A stretch of DNA of 63,415 nucleotides from Guillardia theta CCMP2712 (lineage: Eukaryota > Protista > Cryptophyta): positions 47,855 through 111,269 of the forward strand of contig NW_005434538.1 in the NCBI RefSeq assembly GCF_000315625.1, in the 5' to 3' direction. Both the position numbers and the translations under genes were made by a program. The notes beneath the pieces are model-generated. The model made no database searches. It was given only the letters and a program-made list of their open reading frames with translations, and had not been told where the DNA came from. Positions 88-13,364 of the stretch are shown in pieces. Every line of letters starts with the position of its first letter. Position 1 is the first letter of the stretch.

Positions 88-2544
88 TGAGTGGCGTCAT
101 GAAGAGGCTGCCATATCCTCCGTCATCCTGCCCGCTCGATCGCTGATCGTCTTGCTCGTACTGAACCTGCTTGGGCCAGTCAGCGACGTCTAGCAGAGCA
201 AGGAGAGGCAGTACAGGTTTGTGTCTCGAGCTCCAGGCAGAGAGGCTGCCTCCCTGTAGATGTCGCAAAGTCAACAACCCCCAACTCACCTCCTCCTCCC
301 AGTCCTCCTCCTCCTCAGGATCTCTCACTACCACCACCACCTCCTCTTCCTCCTCGTTCTTTCTCACCCTTCCTCCACTCCTTCGGAAGCAGTCGTCGTC
401 TACCATCCCCAGCTCCTCCCCACGTGGAGGGGTCCGCCTGTCCGGCGTGTCGAAGAAGTTCGCTGGGGTCAGGCGTCAGAGATTGACAGGCCCTGAGCCA
501 GCAGGGAGGCACCTGGGATGACACCGTCGAAGAGGCAGAGGGAATCTCCCGAGGAGTTCAGCAGCTGGCGAAGAGCTGGGGGTCAGCAGGAGACACAGGT
601 GAGCAGGAAGGGGAGATGACCTTGGAGAGAGGAGTGAGGGGAGTCATGCTCTCGTTTGACTTGCCGAGGGCGCTGGAGCACAGAGAGAGTCAGAGAATAT
701 GGAGCAAGGAGGAGGAGGAGGAGGAGGAGGAGGAGGAGGAGGAGGCTACAGATGGAGGAGGAAGGAGATTGAGTACCTTCCGAAGAAATCTCCTCCCTCG
801 CTCTTGCGCTGTGGCGTCTTGGCCAGTGAAAGTTCCATGGAGCAAGATAGGATGGTGCCTTCATCCCCCTCTTTCACCGGGTTTGTGTCAGCCTGAGGTT
901 CAGCCTGAGATCAGTTTTGAGGAGGAGGAAGAACTCGATCGCTACCTTGGTCATATGGTGAACCACCTCTGTCGGTCGAGGGTAGCTCGTCGTCCTCTCA
1001 ACCTTGGGCTGAACGGGTGGGGCTGGGGCTGCCTTGAAGGGATCGGCATGGTAGGGGATCAAGGATGGTTTCTTGTTGGCGGCCATCTTTGCCTTGCTGT
1101 CTTCCACCTTCCTCTTCTTCGAGTTCTGCAGCACACACCAGTCACACTCCTCCTCCTCCTCCTCCCCCCCCCCCCCCCTCATCCGCTTCTTACCTCCTTG
1201 TTCTGCTGCACTTGTCTGTTCATCATCACGTTGTTCATCTGCAGATCTCTCCATCCCGCCTGCTTCCCCATCGTCGTCCCCATCATCCCAGCCAGTGCGT
1301 ACGCCCGGGCGTCCACCCCGACCCTCTGGGTCCCCATCATCCCCCCCTTCCCGTACCCGCTGCCTACTTGGCTGTCGTTGCCGGTCTTGGCGGACCCGCG
1401 AGCCTTGTTGGCGTAGCAGAGGGAGTTGTGCGTGTCCTGGTAGAACTTGGGGTGGGGCGCTATACACGTCATCACCATCACCGAGGACGAAGGGTTCATC
1501 GAGTCCTGCAGCAGCTGAGTGATCTTGGTCTCCTTGTAGGGGATCTGTGCTGCGTGCGAGTTGAGAGCGTGGAGGACGGACCCGAGAGACTGGAGGGAGT
1601 GGCTGATGCAGTTGGTGTCCAGGTTCTTCGACTGGCTCCCTCCCTTCTTCCCGTCCTCGTTCCCTGCCAGATCCACGAAGTTCAGCTTGCCGTGATGTGC
1701 TTCTCCGTTGACGACCCTGACGGGCCGGAGGGTCACGAGCAAGTGATGCTTCAGCGAGCGGTTGGTCGACTTGAGGAAGGACATCCTGTCCTCCTTGGCT
1801 GTCTGATAGACCTTGAGGAAACTCTGGTAGGAGTCCACCCGGGCACGGCAGGGATCCGACGGCCCGTCCTGCCCGTCGAAGAGTTCACGAGCACCGCTGT
1901 CAAGGAGGTCGTACGCCGTGTTGTGGTGAACTTCGACGAGAGAGAACTCAAGGTATGAGTTGTTGGGATCGCATTTCATCTCGTTCAAACAGGCGCTGCC
2001 GCAGCTCCTGGCGTTCCCTTGGAAGAGATCCAGGAACAATTTGACGGATCGAACTAGCATCCCAGGATGGGCATCATTCCCCATCAGCGTGTGAGTCTTC
2101 CCTGATCCAGACACTCCAAAGGCAACAACAGCCGCGTTGTTACCTGCCAAGACTTGTTCGATCATCGGCTCGAGCTCCGTCTGAAAGATATCCTCCTGCG
2201 TCGAGGCTGCTGTGTACAACCTGAGAAACTCTTAGCAATCGATCGTGTGCAAGAAAGGAGTAAGTTTGAGAGAGAGAGCATCATGGCATATTGAACAACA
2301 ATCGAGAAGCTGAAGACAAGTTGTCTCACCCGTCAAACTGGTAGATCATAGATCCGCGACCTCCTCGTGGGTCATTCAGCTGAAGCGCCCTCACGCCATT
2401 GACGCTTGCAATCTCCGTGCAGCATCTTGTGCTCTCGGACGGGAGAGCAGGGCGAACTCTGCAGCAGACACGTGCATAGTTCCTCCTCCCTTCCCCTCGT
2501 CCAGCCTGCATCGCCGCTCCCTTCAACGTGCCGACGTTCGCCAT
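88..2544 (-). CDS. Kinesin motor protein, kinesin-10/KIF22(Kid)-like; multi-exon, 3' end probably outside the window
   Basis: Exon 1 (2544-2330) has RVCCRVRP. GT-AG intron 2329-2221 joins in frame (QFDG|LYTAASTQEDIF). Exon 2 has P-loop GVSGSGKTHT, LNFVDLAGNE, IPYKETKITQLLQDS and CIAPHPKFYQDTHNSLCYA, which resembles the KIF22 IAPE..FY.DT motif. Intron 1193-1126 and further low-complexity tail exons follow. Confidence 0.88.
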
Positions 2545-3657: not shown

Positions 3658-6600
3658 TCAATCCTTTTCTTGCTTCAAGAGATCGTGAACTGAAATAAAG
3701 TTCTTCCCATCTCTGTTGATATACACACTTCGCAGTTTCTGTCCTGGCGCTGACCCTGAGGCATCTCCATCATCGACTCCGGATCGGAAGAATTCCAACA
3801 CATCTGCGAATGTTTTGCCTTTCTCTTCTATTTTCCCCCCTTCAATCACTTTGCCTTCCCTCTGCTCAGATGTCACTTGAAGTTTCCACACACCTTCCTC
3901 TCCATGTTCAAAGCTCACCGCCTCTTGCTTCGCCGGACGGTATGATATGTTGTCACCCACCCGCACTGCTCCTTCTTGGAACTTCCTCTTCCACTTTTCT
4001 ATCCTCCACAAGTCTCCCTGCTTCTCGGCAGCTTTACCCTGCAACAAACGTCAGCAGCGACTGACTGACAGCCTCGCTCTCACCTTCTTCGCAGGACTCT
4101 CCCCTACCGGAGGTTCAGAGCTCTTCCTCTTCTCCGGCTCCTCAGTCTTGGGCTTCTTGGATGAGTCGCTGCTCTCCTCCTCAGCCTGTGGCTTCGCCTC
4201 CTGCTGCTTCGCCTCCTGCTGCTTCGCTTCATCTGCCTCCTGCTGCTTCGCTTCATCCGCCTCCTGCTACTCTCGTCAGCGAGCGACACAAGCGAGATGC
4301 AGGCTTACGGCTCGTAGCCCCTCCCCCTTGTCTTGAGCAGCCTGACACATTCTGATTAGGATCGACGCTTGTGAGACAAGATGGAGCTGCTAGACAGACC
4401 TTCTTCTCCTCCTCGCTACTGCAGCAGATGACGACAAAGTCCATCGTACTCTCGGCATTGTCTGATTGTGATGCCTCTATCATGTCAACATCGTCCTCTT
4501 GACTCGCGTCCTCCTTGCAAGGCAACACAGTGGTCCAAGTCTTGGTCATGTTTCCGATGCGAAGGTTTTTGATCTTGTCGTCTATCTTCTCCTTCATGGA
4601 TTCATACGCCTTGGCGGGGAGGATCAAGTTGATCTTTCTGATACATTCCTTATCTCGCAGCAGGTTCCGAACGATGTTAAAGAACGGTTTAAACGCTTCG
4701 ACGTCGTCCCACATGATATTTAACTCCTCGAGTTTGACTCTGTCGAGACTTTTATCTGAAAGCTCGTTCCACTTTCTGCCTGCAGGGACCTCTGCAAAGA
4801 AAGGCTGGTCACCTTCAGACTCGTCCAATGCACGCCTAGACGGAAAGTAGAAAATATTCCTTTGGCTCTCTACCAGGCTCACAAGGAAGGGTATCGAGGC
4901 CTTGGAAGTACTTGTCGTCACGATAGCTTCATCGACTTGCATTCTTTCACGGGCCTCATATGGAAACAATACATCCAAGTACACTGCCTCGCACATTTCT
5001 TGACCTTCCAGCTCTTTGATGTCCCTGTAACTCTCCTTGTAGGCAAAGCTGATGTCTCCGCCTTGTATCCTGCAAGTGACCTTCTTGATGTCTGACTGCG
5101 GATACAACCTTTTCAGCCTCTTGACGATAGTCTCGTACACATCACTCAGAGTTGACATGTCGCTACCACATGCAACGTTGAAGATCTGTCGACCATTCAC
5201 ATGCACCCGACAGACTACCTCGCAGGCCTCAGGCTGATCGTCAACCTCCAGCCTGTCATGAAGGCTGCGGTGCTGCTTGTGATGAAAGAAGCGGTTCACC
5301 TTCAGCACTGCCAGACCCGCCTCCTCGCACAGGTTGTTGAAATCCACGTCCTCCCACACCTTCTTGGGTGGAAACAAAACTCCCTTGCCAATCGTCGACT
5401 TGACATTCAGCAAGAAGAACGAGTAGACGCTGTGAGTTATCTTGAAGGGAACACTGCTGTTCATGAACACGTTCACATCTCGTCGCATCCCGATCACTGC
5501 ATAGCCGTCCGTGTTCCCGCGAACGTCCTGTATTGTAGAGATATCAGACGTGCTCTTGACTCCTCGCTCCATGGCAGCAGCTTTAGCCGCAGCTCCTCGC
5601 ACAGCCTGACAGCTCTTGGGTATCATGCTCGACTCATGATCGAAGAAGCCGTCTGTCTTCGGACACGCTTGTCCCTTCCCTTGCTTGTGGTGTTGGCGGC
5701 ATATCTCTTCAGATGACTTGGGTGCATCACTGATCATATCCTGCATCTGCAGCATTATCGTCGCAAACGAGCAAGCAACAGGCGGGTGAAGTAGCGGCGG
5801 GTCGCTTGCAAACATCTTGCTCAGGTCCAGCTGGTAGCAATCGAGAACGTTGTCGTCGATCATCCAGACTCTCTCCAGGCCCAGCAGGTGCGCGAACAGC
5901 TGGGCGAACAGCCTCGCGTATCCTATCCCTCCGTCCTGCGGGGTCAGGCGAAGCTTTCCGTCATCGGGCATCTGGCGCTCAAACTGCTCAAAGCGAAAGC
6001 CCAGCTCGCTTACAGCCTCGCTCAGAATCATCTCGTGCGACAGAGCGACCACGATGTACTCGCTTCCTACCTCGCTGACGTAGCTCGAGAACTGCCCGTC
6101 TCCCTCGCTGTCATCCGGTCGTACAAGCAACATCTGCCGTACAGGTACGTCGCGGTCTCCCTCTTTGAAGGCGCTCGATCGATCAAGAAATGCAGCTCGC
6201 CCTGTCTGGATGCTGCCGGCAGCGTCTCGCTTGTAAGAAGCAGTCATCACCCAGTTGCGGATAGCTTTCTCCCCTTGAAGCTCAACAGCGCCATTCACTC
6301 TCCCGTCCTTGAGCGAGAAATACCGTGACACTTGTTCTTCTCCGAAAGGAAAGGAAATCCTCGGCCATCGACGCTCGTCGTCTCCAAACAAGCGAGCTAT
6401 CCTCACGCCTCTCATCATCGGCGACAGTCGCAGCAGCTTCACCTTGGTCTTCTCTGGGAGCGTGTGGAGGCAGAGGCATCGCGCAGGGAAATCATTCTTC
6501 ACTTGCCCTGTCGCGAGTCCTTGAGAGGTCCCAGCCGTCGTTTCCCTGCCCTCCCATGCAATGTTCTGAAGGTCTGTTTTCGAACCCAAGGCAGAGAGAC

Positions 6601-9600
6601 TGAGCTCGCTCTTGTCCTGGTTTGATTGGAGCAGAGTTTCACCAGATCGAGTTTTCAATCCTGCTTTCATCATGTCTGCAACGATAGAAGGCATGCTGTC
6701 TTCCCTGTCCCACTCGACGATGTCTCTCAGTCTCTCAACGTCTAAGATCCTCAGCTTGACTTCAGCTCCTTCTGAGATGATCTCGATCGGACTGCTGTCA
6801 CTCTTCCACACTTTCTTTAGGAGACGAATGACTTTCTCCTTCACTTGTATGCACTCGCCCTCAGCGTTCTGGCTTGACGCTGGAGCCAGCAGCGCTTTAC
6901 AGTACAGCTGCTGCCATGACGACCGGCCACGACTGTCCCGCAGACACTTGGCCAGAAGCCTCAGGCGCTGAAAGATCACCATCTTGTGATATTTCCCCTC
7001 CTTCATCTTGAAAAGACCAAGCTTCTGCCCAGCTAGATCCCGCCAGAACGGCATCTCCCAGGCAAGGCGGGTTTGGAACTCAACCTTTATCGGGTAATCC
7101 TCTGGTCGTATTTGAGGTATGCAGGCATACTCACTGTCAGCTCTCAGACCAACTTCTCTCCTGAGAAAGTTGAGAAGGTGCAGATACGCTCCTGTCTTGC
7201 CGATCTGACACTCTGCATGTAAAAGAAAGCGAAGCTGATGCTGTCTTCTTTTCGTGTGGTCTTGACACCAGTCGCAATGATTGACTCTGACTCTCTTGGA
7301 GCCTTCTCCCTCAGCCTTTGCTCGCGTCACGGCCACGTGTTGGTTCCTGTAGTCATGCAGCTCGTTCTTCTGGTAGCTGATGACCAGCTGACCCCTGTCG
7401 TCTCTTCGCTTCATGTGCGTGTGAAGTTGTGGGCTGAGTCGGATGCATTCCCAGATCTCTTTGCTGCAGTATTCAGCTGTCTCCACTGCTTTCATGAGCG
7501 TGTCGTACAAGGAGGAGCTCACGAGGGCAGACGGGAGGTCATGCTCCAGCTCCTTCAGCACTCCTCCGTGAGGGCAGTTGTGCCTGCTAGCTAGCCAAGC
7601 CAAGCTTGCGCTGTCCCGCACGATTATGTACGTGCTATCTGGACATTTCTTGACTTGTGAACTGTCCTGGACTCTGATCTTCGTCTCATCGTCCTGTCTT
7701 CGAGACTCTGTTATCTTGAGACACTGAACGTCTCCCCATGATGGTGATCCTCCTATCTTAAACGTACTCGTGGGGAAGCGAATGAGCATACAGCCTTTCA
7801 GATCCTCAGCCATTGATGCTTGGGCGCTTCTGTCAACATTCCGATCCAGCGTGTACCAATCTTCTTCACCTCTCCTTCCAGGCGACAAGGTCTTGCCACG
7901 TTCCACGACCTGCAGAATACTTTTCTGAGTCCAGCTGGACAAGCTCCACGCTATCCCAATGAGTCGCTTCCCATCGAGACCTTGTGACAGATCCACTTCA
8001 TCGTCTGCAGCATTCGCATACACAACGATCGGCCGTCCCTTCCCTTCGAACCATCTCTTCTCCTTTGCTACCTGCACCGCCTCCTCCGATGTCTCGAAGC
8101 AGTGCTCCTCACGCAAAGTCGGGTAGCGACAGAGTCTGCCCATCTCCTGCGGCACGTTCAAGTCAGTAGGAGGAGGTTGAGGACCCCGCGGTCAAGTACA
8201 CGAGGCGACAAGAGGTCGCACCTGGATCAGCGTCGTCGTGTTGTCAGACGAGCGCACGCGCAAGTCAAGACAATCGAAGGAGTGCGGGAACGTGTCGCCC
8301 ATGCGGCCCTTCTCGATCAGGACCAAGATACACGGGAGTCCCTCCAGGTCCTTGTAGTTCAGGCTCGTCAACTTCTTTCCACGCGCTCTGCCTTGAATGA
8401 GCGAGTTGATAGAGCGAGGTGCTTTGTCCTTGTCGTAGGTCAGCGGCTCATCTCGAAACTGAGTTTCAATGCAGTCGTACAGCTCAGACCCTCCGTAGTC
8501 TTCGATGACCGCGAATACCGAATCTCCAAACAAGGATTTGCGTATTCGCTTCAGCTCCTCACAAACCTCATCGGCTAGCTTGATGCTAAACATTCCGACT
8601 ACTTTCATATGTCCGTAAAGACCCCCGTTATGCTTGCGCTGGCTTAGAAGATCCTTGACTATTCTGTCTGTCTCGTTGAATTGGAAGTAGTCGTCTGCCT
8701 CCATGAACGAGTCGTCATCATTCACTTCAACACTTTCTTCCTTCGCCTCTGACTTCAGTTTGATGTAGAACACCTCTGCGATACAATCCCGAGCCGCACT
8801 CCCACTTCTCTCCTCCTTCAGGGTCTCCTTGACTCGCTCCCGCAGCTTCGCACAAGCTTGTCTAGCTCCACTTGACTTGCACTTGTTTGCTATTGTCATG
8901 TATTCTTCCTCGAGCTTCAACTTCTCCAGATCTTTAAGAGTGATATTGTGCAAGTCGTCAGCAACACTCTTCAGCCTGCCAGTGCTTCGGTCCCAACGGA
9001 CTTTGTGAAAGTAGAGCATCGAAAGGATAAAGTCTGCGAGCCAGACATGCTCCCTGACGGCTTCTTCTTCTTCCTTCTTCTTCCTCGAAACTTTGACGGA
9101 CTCCATCAGCGTGCTGATCAGGTTGTTTTCTCGACGGATGAGTTGATTCCGCACGTCCTCTCGAGTTTGATCGTCTGCAGAAGCCTCTTCACCGGGTAGG
9201 ATACACTCATCTAAGACATAAGACGGCAAAGTTCGCAGGAAGTCTTCAAACCGAAAGTATATCGTCCGGTATCTCCGCGATCTCAGCTTCCACTTGATCA
9301 CGTGCAGCTCCTCATCAAACTCGCCAGTCTTTTGCTCCTTCGCTTCTTGCACCGGCTTGTAAGGATCATCCTCCTCGAACTTCACGTACTTCTCGGGTAT
9401 CCTACTGTGGAGGGTGAGGTTTGGGTACGGTGTAGCACTGACTTGCAACACTATGAAGTTCTTCTTCTCCATCAGGTTTGGATCATTGATAATCAGGTCT
9501 TGAGGGCTGCCTTTGTTCAACGCCCAATGCGACTCATCGGAGATCAGCACAAACAGCGTCTTGTCTGAAATGCTCAGAATCTTCTTTCTCAGCTGCTCCG

Positions 9601-12600
9601 CCGCAGGTGCTTGATGAGCAACGACCTTGTTACACTCTCTGTCTGAGGTCATATCGGAGAACAAGGTCTCGAGCATGCGTGCTTCGGTCTGCTGCTTGAG
9701 GGTCAAGAAGTTCGGAACAAGAATCGCAAAGTCAAGCTTCTCAAAGTCTCTCAGGCTCATCTTCTCTTCCTGCAACACAAACTTGAGTCGGTTCAAGATC
9801 CGGCCGGCTACCGCCTTCTGCTCCGGAAACACTCTCCCTAACGCACGAGCATCCGTCTCGATCTCTGAGGCGTCGAGCGGTCGCAGCGTCTCTAGAACAT
9901 CTTCAGATGACGGAAGCACCGACGCCTCGACCCTCATCTTGATCACCAGCTGAAGCCCGAGCTCAGGGTCTTGGTTTGACCTCTGCTTGTTGTATCGCTC
10001 CGATATGGCTTGAAAGTAACCCGTGTCTTGACGATCAAACGTCTTTCTGCCCCCAAACCCATCATCGAGTATCTCGATCTTGACGATCCTCTCGATTCCT
10101 CTCACTCGACATGGCTTGGTGAACTCCTCAGACTCGAAGGCTTCCTTCACACGCTTCTCAAACTCTTCTGGAGTGAGTTGCTCAAGATCCTGCTGGATAA
10201 TCTCGATCGCTGATTTATGTCCCTTACAGCCTCCTGCACCTTGAAGCTCAATCCTGCATGGTCTGTCTGAGACCTCCTGCCTCTGCTCAGCCTCGCTGAG
10301 CAGGTTGAGCTCTTTTTCCAACAACTCAATGTCTGCTGTTTGACGCATGATGATAAGAAAGCCAATGGTGCGATCTTCCAGCCTTTGTCCTTCATTGATG
10401 CGAATCATCTGTATTCTGCTGGGTTTACTATCTGCAGGAACGGAAGGGCCTTCGCCTTCACTTCCCACAAATACTTCTACGAACCTGAAACTGCCATCAG
10501 CGTTCAAACTCTGCCAAGTCCATCTTTCTGTCTGTTTTTGAGTCGACTTTGTCATACAGTCGTAGATTTGTTCTTTCCCTCGTGAAGGCAGCTTTTGACT
10601 TATCAGATCATTCTTTTCTCTCTGATTCATACCGAGTGCGCGCGCCATCATGGCTGCGCCTTCCAGCAACTCGCGCTTTTGCGAATCATTATTCTCGGAT
10701 TCTTTGGCTTTGTTAATGCAGCCGAGGACGTTGATTTCTTTGTTTTTAGTCAGGCGTTTTTGCAAGGCAGTCACCAGCTGGGGAAAGAACGAAATGTCTG
10801 TCATCATGCTCTGATGTTCGAGAGACAAGTCAGAGTAAAAAGCACATTCGTGAGCTTCAAGCCTCTTCAAGTCAATCTTCAAATCTTGACAAATCTTCTT
10901 CATCCATATGCTGGTTTCTTCGTCGACACCAACAGTAATTCCGATACCTGCCCCATCGAAGCTTTCTTCGATTTCCATTTTCACTGAAAGCATTGACCTG
11001 GCCAAGTAAACAAAAGTGTCAAAATGAATATTCGCAAACAAAGCTTCTCCTGAAGAATCCGTTGCTAAATCTGCTGGTAGACTTTGAAAATATCTAAGAG
11101 ATTATGATGATCAAATCTAAGAAAATTTCAAAAAACAAGCCATCTTGTTTTCTCACTACACTGGACCCATCTCTTGTGCTGTCCTCGCGTGAGATTTCTC
11201 GCCAGTTCCTCAGGTCATCGGCCTCTTCCACATTGCAAACAAAACAAAATGCTAGAAGGCATGAAAAAATGGTAGTTCTACAGTTCGCTTACCCTGCAAG
11301 CGGGGTTTCTTGGACCCCAGCAGAGTCAGCACTCAATTTCTTGCTAGTCTTGGCAGGAACTTTCTCTTCTCGATATGTCACTTTCTTCACAGGGTCGACC
11401 TGTTGAAACCAAAAATAAGAAAGAAAGTTATCCAGACAACAAAATGAAACGGCAAATCTTTACGCACCTTTTCCATTTTGATGTTTGGTTTCGAATCTTC
11501 AAGAGATTTTCGATCTGGAAGTTCAAGTCATACTCCTCTCGTTCAAGTCAATCAAACGCTTGACCTTTTCTTTGAGGCAAGATTGTTATCGATCCTGCCC
11601 CACATGATTTCAGTATGTTGATTGAGATGGGCAACGAAGAGGTTGTTTAGTACCTGGTTGCTCCAATTTCTTCCAATCAATGAATTTCGACACACCTCCC
11701 CCGACGGTGAGCAGCAGGGTCCGAAGCATCTCTACCTCCTTCGCTTCCATCCTCTCCTCCATCTCCCCGTACTCACGAGGTCCGCTCAGCCAACCGCTGC
11801 TGCTGATCCATGTTCGAAACAAGCCCTCTTTTCCATTCCCGCCTAGAACCTCTCGGACGCTCTTCGCAAGCATCACTGACATACAAGCGCTGCTCAATCT
11901 TGTCATCTTCAAGAACGCAACGCAGCTGCCGGTCTCGACGACTCGAGACAGAACGTGAACAGCAAGCAGAGGGCTCAGTCGCCCTTCTTGGTCAGCGGTT
12001 ATCTTGTCTTTGAGATATTCTTCCGCAAGGTCTAGTGCCTCCTCTTGTTCTTTTTCCCCCTTACTGTAGTGATCTGCAAGATAGTCGTTCCTGGTCCACC
12101 ATTTTATTTCTGCATTCGCCTCCTCTTCCATATGTCTCAATGAGCTTCTAATCTCCTCGCGCACTGTGAAATCAATAGCTGCTGTCACCATCTTCTTCCT
12201 GTCAATCTCCCCGTATCTCTCTCGTATCCATCGCTCCAGTTTCTCTGACCAGATCTCATCGGCAACCATGGCCTTCCCAACTGTTTTGATCAGCTCAGGC
12301 CCGACCATCTGCTTTGCAAAGGCATGAAAGAATCCTCGGTCACCTTGTTTTTTGTACGTCGTGCCCTTGTTGCTCAGGAACACCAAAAGGAACATCGAGC
12401 ATATTTTCCATCGTGGACCCTTATCTTGCAAGCTAAAAAGGCTTTTTCTTACGAGCTGGAGGAGACTTTCTCGGAAAACATCTGCTCCTGTTCGTGTTGC
12501 TGCAGGACTGTACGCTGCTACAACCTGCACCCCCGAGTCTGTACTGTCTGGCTGCATCCCCTCGCTTTGAATCAAGCTTTCCACTCCCATCCTTATCTGT

Positions 12601-13364
12601 TGCAGGTCTGCTGCTACCGTCTTATCATTTCTGAGACAGAGCTTGTCTGGAATGAGTTCCGTACACAATGTCCTTGCATACTGACCATACTTTCCTTGTT
12701 CTCTGTCGTAGCTCATCCGCACCGCGTATTCTATGGCGAGTTTGAGTCTTCGATTCTGAGCAAACATTCCTTGCTCGCTGTCAAGTAGATCTTCGAGGAA
12801 TGCTGATTCGTCCGATGCTTGTTGACCTCTGCTGCACGAAAGGCACAGCGACACTCGCATTCGTTGGATCAAGCTGGATCCTTCATGCTCCAACCTCTCC
12901 ATCCCCATCCACGCGCTTCTCTTGGAGTTTCGGCAGGCATCGATGATAACCAGCAAAGGAGGAATCCTGTCTGAATTCTGGGCAGCTCCATCTCTAAGGG
13001 CCTCCAACATATCCGCTACTGTTATCATGCTCTGCTTAGTCTCTTCAGATTCCTCGGCCCGGACGATGTCACTTGTTAGCAATGCTATATCTCCTTTACT
13101 TAGCTGCATCCCATGCCCAGCAAAGAACACCAATATCAGCTCCAGGCCCCTCGTCTTGCGATCCCTTACGAGGGAAGAAATCTGACTTGTGATCGCCGTC
13201 CTCGTTGAAGGGTTGACCAGAAGAGTTGCCTGGCATCCGGGGCTGCTTTCCAGCTGATTGTGAACGTCAGTAGCGTCACGAATGGCGTTGTCCAAGGTGG
13301 AAATATGCTCGTAGGCATCAATACCAATGCAGAGCGTTTTAATCCGGCAAGTATTCTCTCCCAT
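3658..13364 (-). CDS. Giant GREB1-like fusion protein: peptidase C14 (caspase-like) domain + circularly permuted SF2 ATPase + TAGT/GT-A glycosyltransferase + possible RAMA-like C-terminal domain (~3,000 aa)
   Basis: In-frame GT-AG model with exons 13364-11654, 11594-11565, 11514-11468, 11399-11293, 11093-8222, 8146-4400, 4341-~4309, ~4268-4083 and ~4038-3658. Motifs in order: CIGIDAY, FAGHG, IIDACRN (caspase dyad); ISDESH, VSATP, LEGLPCILVLIEKGRMGDTFPHSFDCLDLR, IQ|EMGRLCR (SF2 motifs II, III, V, VI); QIGKTGAYL (motif I, downstream); GGIGYAR, WMIDDN, YAVIGMRR, FFLLNV, EDVDFN, AGLAVLKVNRF (GREB1-type GT). The helicase-to-GT join is strongly supported; the caspase join is inferred from splice phases. 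Confidence 0.78.

Follow-up and report, generated by a model that had tools for sequence, protein, structure and literature searches.

Enzymes of canonical superfamily 2 (SF2), among them the RIG-I-like, DEAH/RHA, SNF2, HsdR/ResIII and FANCM/Hef groups, have two RecA-like domains, RecA1 and RecA2, and carry DExH in motif II, SAT in motif III, a GxD..P-type motif V and QxxGRxxR in motif VI. JBP2-type enzymes are SF2 ATPases fused to a DNA-base-modifying enzyme. A rearranged SF2 domain, cpSF2-GREB1, has been curated in Pfam under the name 'Circularly permuted SF2 helicase found in GREB1 proteins' (PF20692; profile length 716, gathering score 26.2 bits), and Iyer et al. 2013 is said to be the source of the domain definition. 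GREB1-like proteins have been listed for Cryptomonada among other lineages, and the helicase-like domain of human GREB1 has been described as catalytically inactive (PMC7968844). Pfam and the literature between them already cover the permuted helicase, its link with GREB1 and its occurrence in cryptomonads; our literature search found nothing linking GREB1 with Guillardia. Here we describe a gene on the minus strand of a 63,415-nucleotide stretch of the genome of the cryptophyte Guillardia theta CCMP2712 (contig NW_005434538.1, positions 47,855 to 111,269), which is the window whose numbering is used below. The gene almost certainly encodes a cpSF2-GREB1 domain, as judged from sequence comparison, and this domain probably works as a circularly permuted nucleoside triphosphatase (NTPase).

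Family membership and motif order of the Guillardia domain

The gene runs through two large open frames, exon A (11041-8222, 940 codons) and exon B (8146-4256, 1297 codons), and PF20692 matches the end of the first and the beginning of the second (Table 1). In its first part, the domain comprises RecA1 lacking the opening strand, a long helical insert, and RecA2 as far as the Gln residue of motif VI; in its second part, the remainder of motif VI is followed by about 300 inserted residues, after which come the displaced strand, P-loop and helix. A 66-residue piece around the GKT sequence is sufficient to match the last part of the profile (E 6e-20). The piece spanning motifs II and III gives a weak ResIII match at profile positions 93-162 only, and this limitation to the second half of the ResIII profile is expected if the first half has moved. 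The helicase region also aligns directly with cod GREB1L by BLASTP (E 2e-11 and 1e-10). Together with the Pfam family name, these alignments bear out the statement of an earlier sequence-only reading of the window that the permutation is the hallmark of GREB1. The Guillardia protein matches the cpSF2-GREB1 profile over its full length and has the motif order of this family, and it probably also has the downstream TAGT-type region. Searches of both exons and of the upstream open reading frame at E <= 0.1 detected neither PF15782, which is the animal N-terminal GREB1 domain, nor PF20267 or PF20688, whereas all three are present in all fish members. Therefore, the Guillardia protein is GREB1-like and not a GREB1 orthologue, and a caspase-like open reading frame lies upstream in Guillardia instead of the animal N-terminal domains. 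PADLOC and NCBIfam gave no match for the helicase exons.

The motifs follow one another along the minus strand in the order Ia-like, II, III, IV-like, V, VI and then I, and every one of them falls in a conserved column of the family alignment; in cod, the Ia-like block of this alignment reads FLVLVPPSHALMHQT. With canonical SF2 enzymes the Guillardia domain has in common the two RecA-like domains and the DExH, SAT, GxD..P-type and QxxGRxxR motifs. Unlike in these enzymes, the strand, P-loop and helix that open RecA1 stand last in the Guillardia chain, and there are two links between the RecA domains, both with large inserts. Direct reading and translation confirmed the permuted order proposed from the sequence, namely motifs II, III, V and VI followed by Walker A about 310 residues further on. 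The positions proposed for DESH and the intron are exact, whereas QIGKTG lies at 7207-7190, one base off the proposed 7208-7191. The Walker A motif is preceded by a hydrophobic strand, LRFLLH, and followed by a helix, GAYLHLLNFL. Its sequence AECQIGKT is the sole [AG]x4GK[ST] match in the three minus-strand frames between 13500 and 3600, and no second Walker A occurs in these frames, including upstream of DESH, where the canonical order would place it.

Single motifs could each arise by chance in a protein this long. Residue shuffles of both exons produced a Walker A pattern in 12%, DExH in 22%, QxxGRxxR in 3% and all three jointly in 0.12% of cases, and the argument for the domain therefore rests on homology. 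The frequency of the Walker A pattern in the shuffles is what favors the explanation that the GKT sequence is accidental, or that the motif order is an artefact of the assembly or of the gene model, the domain being an ordinary SF2 domain. However, the same order is found in the intronless proteins P0010, P0011, P0012 and P0013, in cod GREB1L and in four paralogues, and the GKT segment matches the family profile by itself with no Walker A upstream, so this explanation keeps a negligible probability. The occurrence of the same motif order in independent intronless proteins refutes it.

Motif VI is assembled across the intron. Exon A ends with ..CTG ATC CAG at 8222, the donor GT occupies 8221-8220 and the acceptor AG 8148-8147, and exon B opens with GAG ATG GGC AGA CTC TGT CGC from 8146, so that the spliced product reads LIQ/EMGRLCRYP and restores QxxGRxxR. 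The PF20692 profile is unbroken over this junction, position 420 in exon A and position 421 in exon B meeting exactly at the proposed splice site. In agreement with this, a GT..AG intron is present at the identical LIQ/E point in 4 of 4 paralogues in the genome, and intronless homologues are colinear across the position of the intron. The best match outside the genome is a transcript of the cryptophyte Hanusia phi. A transcript-derived protein of this species, P0001, continues with unrelated sequence exactly after LIQ and is without the EMGRL part of motif VI; to judge from its sequence, this looks like read-through into an unspliced intron at a junction matching that of Guillardia.

Table 1. 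Positions in the window of the permuted domain, its motifs and associated features
Feature	Positions	Strand	Details
cpSF2-GREB1 domain, first part	8222-9835	-	Exon A residues 403-940; PF20692 positions 2-420, E 3.7e-131, 439.5 bits
cpSF2-GREB1 domain, second part	7151-8146	-	Exon B residues 1-332; PF20692 positions 421-705, E 1.8e-63, 215.7 bits
Motif Ia-like strand and helix, FAILVPNFLTLKQQT	9686-9730	-	Conserved block in the family alignment; corresponds to strand E324-331 of the P0012 model
Motif II (Walker B), DESH	9538-9527	-	GAT GAG TCG CAT; sequence read
Motif III, SAT	9439-9431	-	Sequence read and family alignment; SCF in cod
Motif IV-like, first RecA2 strand, GHMKVVG	8594-8614	-	Last residue Gly (gga, 8596-8594), Arg in the family
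Motif V, EKGRMGDTFP	8314-8285	-	Sequence read and family alignment
Motif VI, QEMGRLCR	Q 8224-8222; EMGRLCR 8146-8126	-	Split by the intron; QxxGRxxR
Motif I (Walker A), AECQIGKT	7216-7193	-	Exon B residues 311-318, about 310 residues after motif VI
Phase-0 intron	8221-8147	-	GT..AG, 75 nucleotides, in-frame stop inside; splits motif VI after Q
TAGT-like glycosyltransferase region	5093-5935	-	Downstream in exon B; PF20691 25.7 bits against a cut-off of 27.5; context only

Catalytic residues in protists and fish

The family alignment contains non-animal relatives from haptophyte-like and other sources, and the counts refer to members carrying the relevant region. Each motif that is carried is kept: DE[CS]H is found in 4 members, SAT or SAS in 6, [KN][GA]RMG[DN]TFP in 11, QExGRxxRYP in 10 and AE[CT]QIGKT in 12. 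The motif II column is DE[CS]H in the non-animal members and DNSH in cod, and the motif I column, wherever a non-animal member carries it, is AE[CT]Q[IA]GKT. The Guillardia copy retains the Lys and Thr residues of Walker A, the Asp and Glu residues of Walker B, SAT and both arginines of motif VI, and of 61 family columns with strong conservation it matches 60, while cod deviates at 28 of 78.

The animal sample consists of 120 GREB1/GREB1L proteins (P0014-P0133), all of them from fish. Where Guillardia has DESH, SAT and QxxGRxxR, the fish proteins have DN[SA]H (117 of 120), SCF (seen in cod) and QEVGLAC[TS] (120 of 120), the last of these lacking both motif VI arginines; motif V reads GKDPLGETFP in all 120. 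The sequence-only reading had stated that vertebrate motif VI is degenerate and had proposed an alignment with animal and non-animal homologues. The former holds for every fish protein, in line with the inactivity of the human domain (PMC7968844), with which the fish motif losses agree as a whole, and the latter separates non-animal members, which keep all the motifs they carry, from fish, which have lost the catalytic Glu and both arginines. GKT is nevertheless kept in all 120 fish proteins, in 118 of them as GPPQVGKTGAY, and this conservation suggests that the 'inactive' vertebrate domain may still be selected for binding nucleotide or for some structural function of its P-loop. We did not find this combination, a full catalytic set in protists and its loss in fish with a kept P-loop, stated in the papers that we read; Iyer et al. 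2013 may already say so.

Since all the residues of SF2 enzymes for NTP binding and hydrolysis are present, a working NTPase is the most likely role of the Guillardia domain, and we regard a working circularly permuted NTPase domain of a GREB1-like protein, with good though not full confidence, as the best explanation of the observations. Real NTPase activity of the Guillardia copy itself, as predicted from its residues, appears somewhat less secure, the balance still being in its favor. The fish proteins bring in another explanation, which is that the domain is a nucleotide-binding scaffold and not a motor, binding NTP or nucleic acid and only holding or regulating the glycosyltransferase, as is assumed for vertebrate GREB1. 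Because every fish protein keeps GKT although the two arginines of motif VI are always missing and the catalytic Glu is missing in 117, the fold can be selected without hydrolysis, and a nucleic-acid binding role suggested for the inactive human domain (PMC7968844) counts on the same side. However, every non-animal member and 3 of the 4 Guillardia paralogues keep the catalytic Glu, SAT and the two arginines of motif VI, and such conservation is hard to explain without selection for hydrolysis. A mere scaffold is therefore unlikely, without being far-fetched.

Predicted fold, paralogues and observations against NTPase activity

Sequence searches with exon B residues 1-349 and with the family profile gave no match to solved structures, even at E 1 and E 10. 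AlphaFold models were built from the family alignment for two intronless relatives, P0012 (1143 residues, mean predicted local distance difference test score (pLDDT) 63, predicted template modelling score (pTM) 0.65) and P0013 (947 residues, mean pLDDT 56, pTM 0.50). In both models, the GKT segment forms a strand, a loop and a helix with a block-mean pLDDT of 72-93 and lies between low-confidence linkers. An exhaustive structural search with VIA-align has shown that small single alpha/beta domains align nearly whole with the models over a stretch reaching from the Ia strand into the helix that follows the P-loop. With P0012, 2b4a_A aligns over 113 of 116 residues with a root-mean-square deviation of 3.3 (model 323..1089), 3hdg_A over 122 of 124 and 6xeh over 114 of 125; with P0013, 4c6t_A aligns over 128 of 141 residues (model 182..851) and 5ucv_B over 138 of 186. 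Since such a match to a compact domain requires the C-terminal unit to share one sheet with the strands of Ia, DExH and SAT, the alignment ranges suggest that the C-terminal strand, P-loop and helix share a compact domain with the DExH strand in the models. The strand order implied by this mapping would be Ia, DExH, SAT, P-loop, which is the usual order for this class of P-loop NTPases. Many SF2 helicases, among them RIG-I, HrpB, Prp43, DHX36, CHD4, HsdR, FANCM and Cas3, align with the models over 220-349 residues (Z 5.6-6.8).

Several observations weigh against a working NTPase. The modelled homologues are only 24-28% identical to the Guillardia exons and do not represent the spliced protein of Guillardia itself. 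VIA-align gave no structural match of Z 8 or above for either model, and Foldseek gave none against the PDB at E <= 0.001, its best weak rows being RIG-I-like helicases mixed with ClpB/Hsp104. Since all Z values are below 8 and Foldseek has no significant match, the structure searches fit an SF2 core and name no subfamily. Our literature search found no report of a GREB1 ATPase or structure, and no enzyme assay is known for any family member. The sole deviation of the Guillardia copy in the 61 conserved columns is Gly816, in the motif IV-like strand, where 14 of 14 other members, including cod GREB1L, have Arg. Motif IV in other SF2 enzymes contacts the nucleic-acid backbone, and for this reason Gly816 is a real caveat for the Guillardia copy, since it could weaken nucleic-acid binding or coupling. 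The loss of this invariant Arg is also a point for a scaffold.

The paralogues add to these observations. The genome searched (87.1 Mb, 669 contigs) contains four of them, three of which keep the full catalytic motif set. The one on contig C280 (L004 340-3177, L008 2430-3266), which has an additional intron ahead of its Walker A exon, reads DQSH, GRMGETFP and AECQAGKT. The Glu-to-Gln change in its Walker B is the classic one that leaves binding without hydrolysis, so that this paralogue may be naturally hydrolysis-deficient, and the change speaks for a scaffold as well. Together with vertebrate GREB1, which functions although the catalytic residues are gone, this DQSH paralogue indicates that the scaffold has hydrolysis-independent uses.

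Another paralogue (L003/L006, contig C136) is nearly identical to the window gene and lies about 27-30 kb before the window start on the opposite strand, tail to tail with it. The two copies share 95% amino-acid identity, with a synonymous divergence (dS) of 0.03-0.06 and a ratio of nonsynonymous to synonymous divergence (dN/dS) of 0.48-0.65, and this ratio is fairly relaxed and so belongs with the points against activity. Their differences are clustered, with patches at residues 99-170 of exon A and 126-136 of exon B, and none of the substitutions falls in motif I, II, III, V or VI; the single change at a conserved site is G816, for which the neighbor has CGC (Arg). The close identity on the same contig, the low dS, the dN/dS ratio and the fact that the only family deviation hits an invariant Arg kept by the neighbor would all suit a young duplicate that is drifting to loss of function while the neighboring paralogue does the work. 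However, both exons are open over 2237 codons with intact splice sites, and the 60 matched columns and the untouched motifs stand against such decay, which makes this explanation quite improbable. A working permuted NTPase stays the reading that we prefer.

Possible working of the domain and its partners

In a working NTPase, the displaced strand, P-loop and helix would fit into RecA1 again, next to the strands of SAT and DESH, and the NTP would be held between RecA1, which provides the P-loop and DESH, and RecA2, which provides the arginine fingers. Hydrolysis would then drive movement on, or remodelling of, nucleic acid, and this may position the putative glycosyltransferase whose coding region lies downstream in exon B. 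That the domain hydrolyses NTP, what it acts on and how it is coupled to the glycosyltransferase are what we infer here. As a result of the permutation, two connections run between the RecA domains: a helical stretch of about 290 residues inserted between motifs III and IV, and the insert of about 300 residues that separates motif VI from motif I. Being tethered twice may limit or retune how the RecA domains normally open and close.

The putative glycosyltransferase region of exon B aligns with the C-terminal TAGT region of cod GREB1L (BLASTP E 2e-4), and the homologues P0002-P0011 carry PF20691. A genome-scale search with the TAGT profile PF20691 gave no match, and neither did a six-frame genome search for Tet_JBP (PF12851), the usual partner of TAGT-type glycosyltransferases; neither result proves absence. 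Without a Tet_JBP match, there is no local support for a role on hydroxymethylated DNA bases. The Guillardia protein and JBP2-type enzymes both unite, on a single chain, an SF2 motor with a catalytic domain that modifies nucleic acid or protein, but the motor of the latter is of the SNF2 type and not permuted, and the partner enzyme is another one. The open reading frame just upstream of exon A (11613-13364, likewise on the minus strand) is recognized as encoding a caspase domain both by Pfam (Peptidase_C14, E 9e-16) and by PADLOC (caspase, E 3.8e-12).

It is conceivable, if rather doubtful, that protist GREB1-like proteins are NTP-driven motors carrying a glycosyltransferase along DNA or RNA, here perhaps with a caspase-like protease too, and that ancestral GREB1 was an ATP-dependent nucleic-acid-modifying or surveillance machine of which vertebrates kept only the scaffold and the sugar transferase. 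The sequence-only reading had suggested that the Guillardia homologue may retain ATPase or translocase activity and may show the ancestral role of GREB1, and this stays a conjecture. Since every catalytic residue is kept in them, the algal and protist versions are natural material for the original role of this rearranged motor, and they could show whether hydrolysis is still supported when the P-loop comes from the other end of the chain. The Guillardia domain is thus a useful lead for GREB1 biology and for studies of protein topology, a modest and testable one that introduces no new kind of system.

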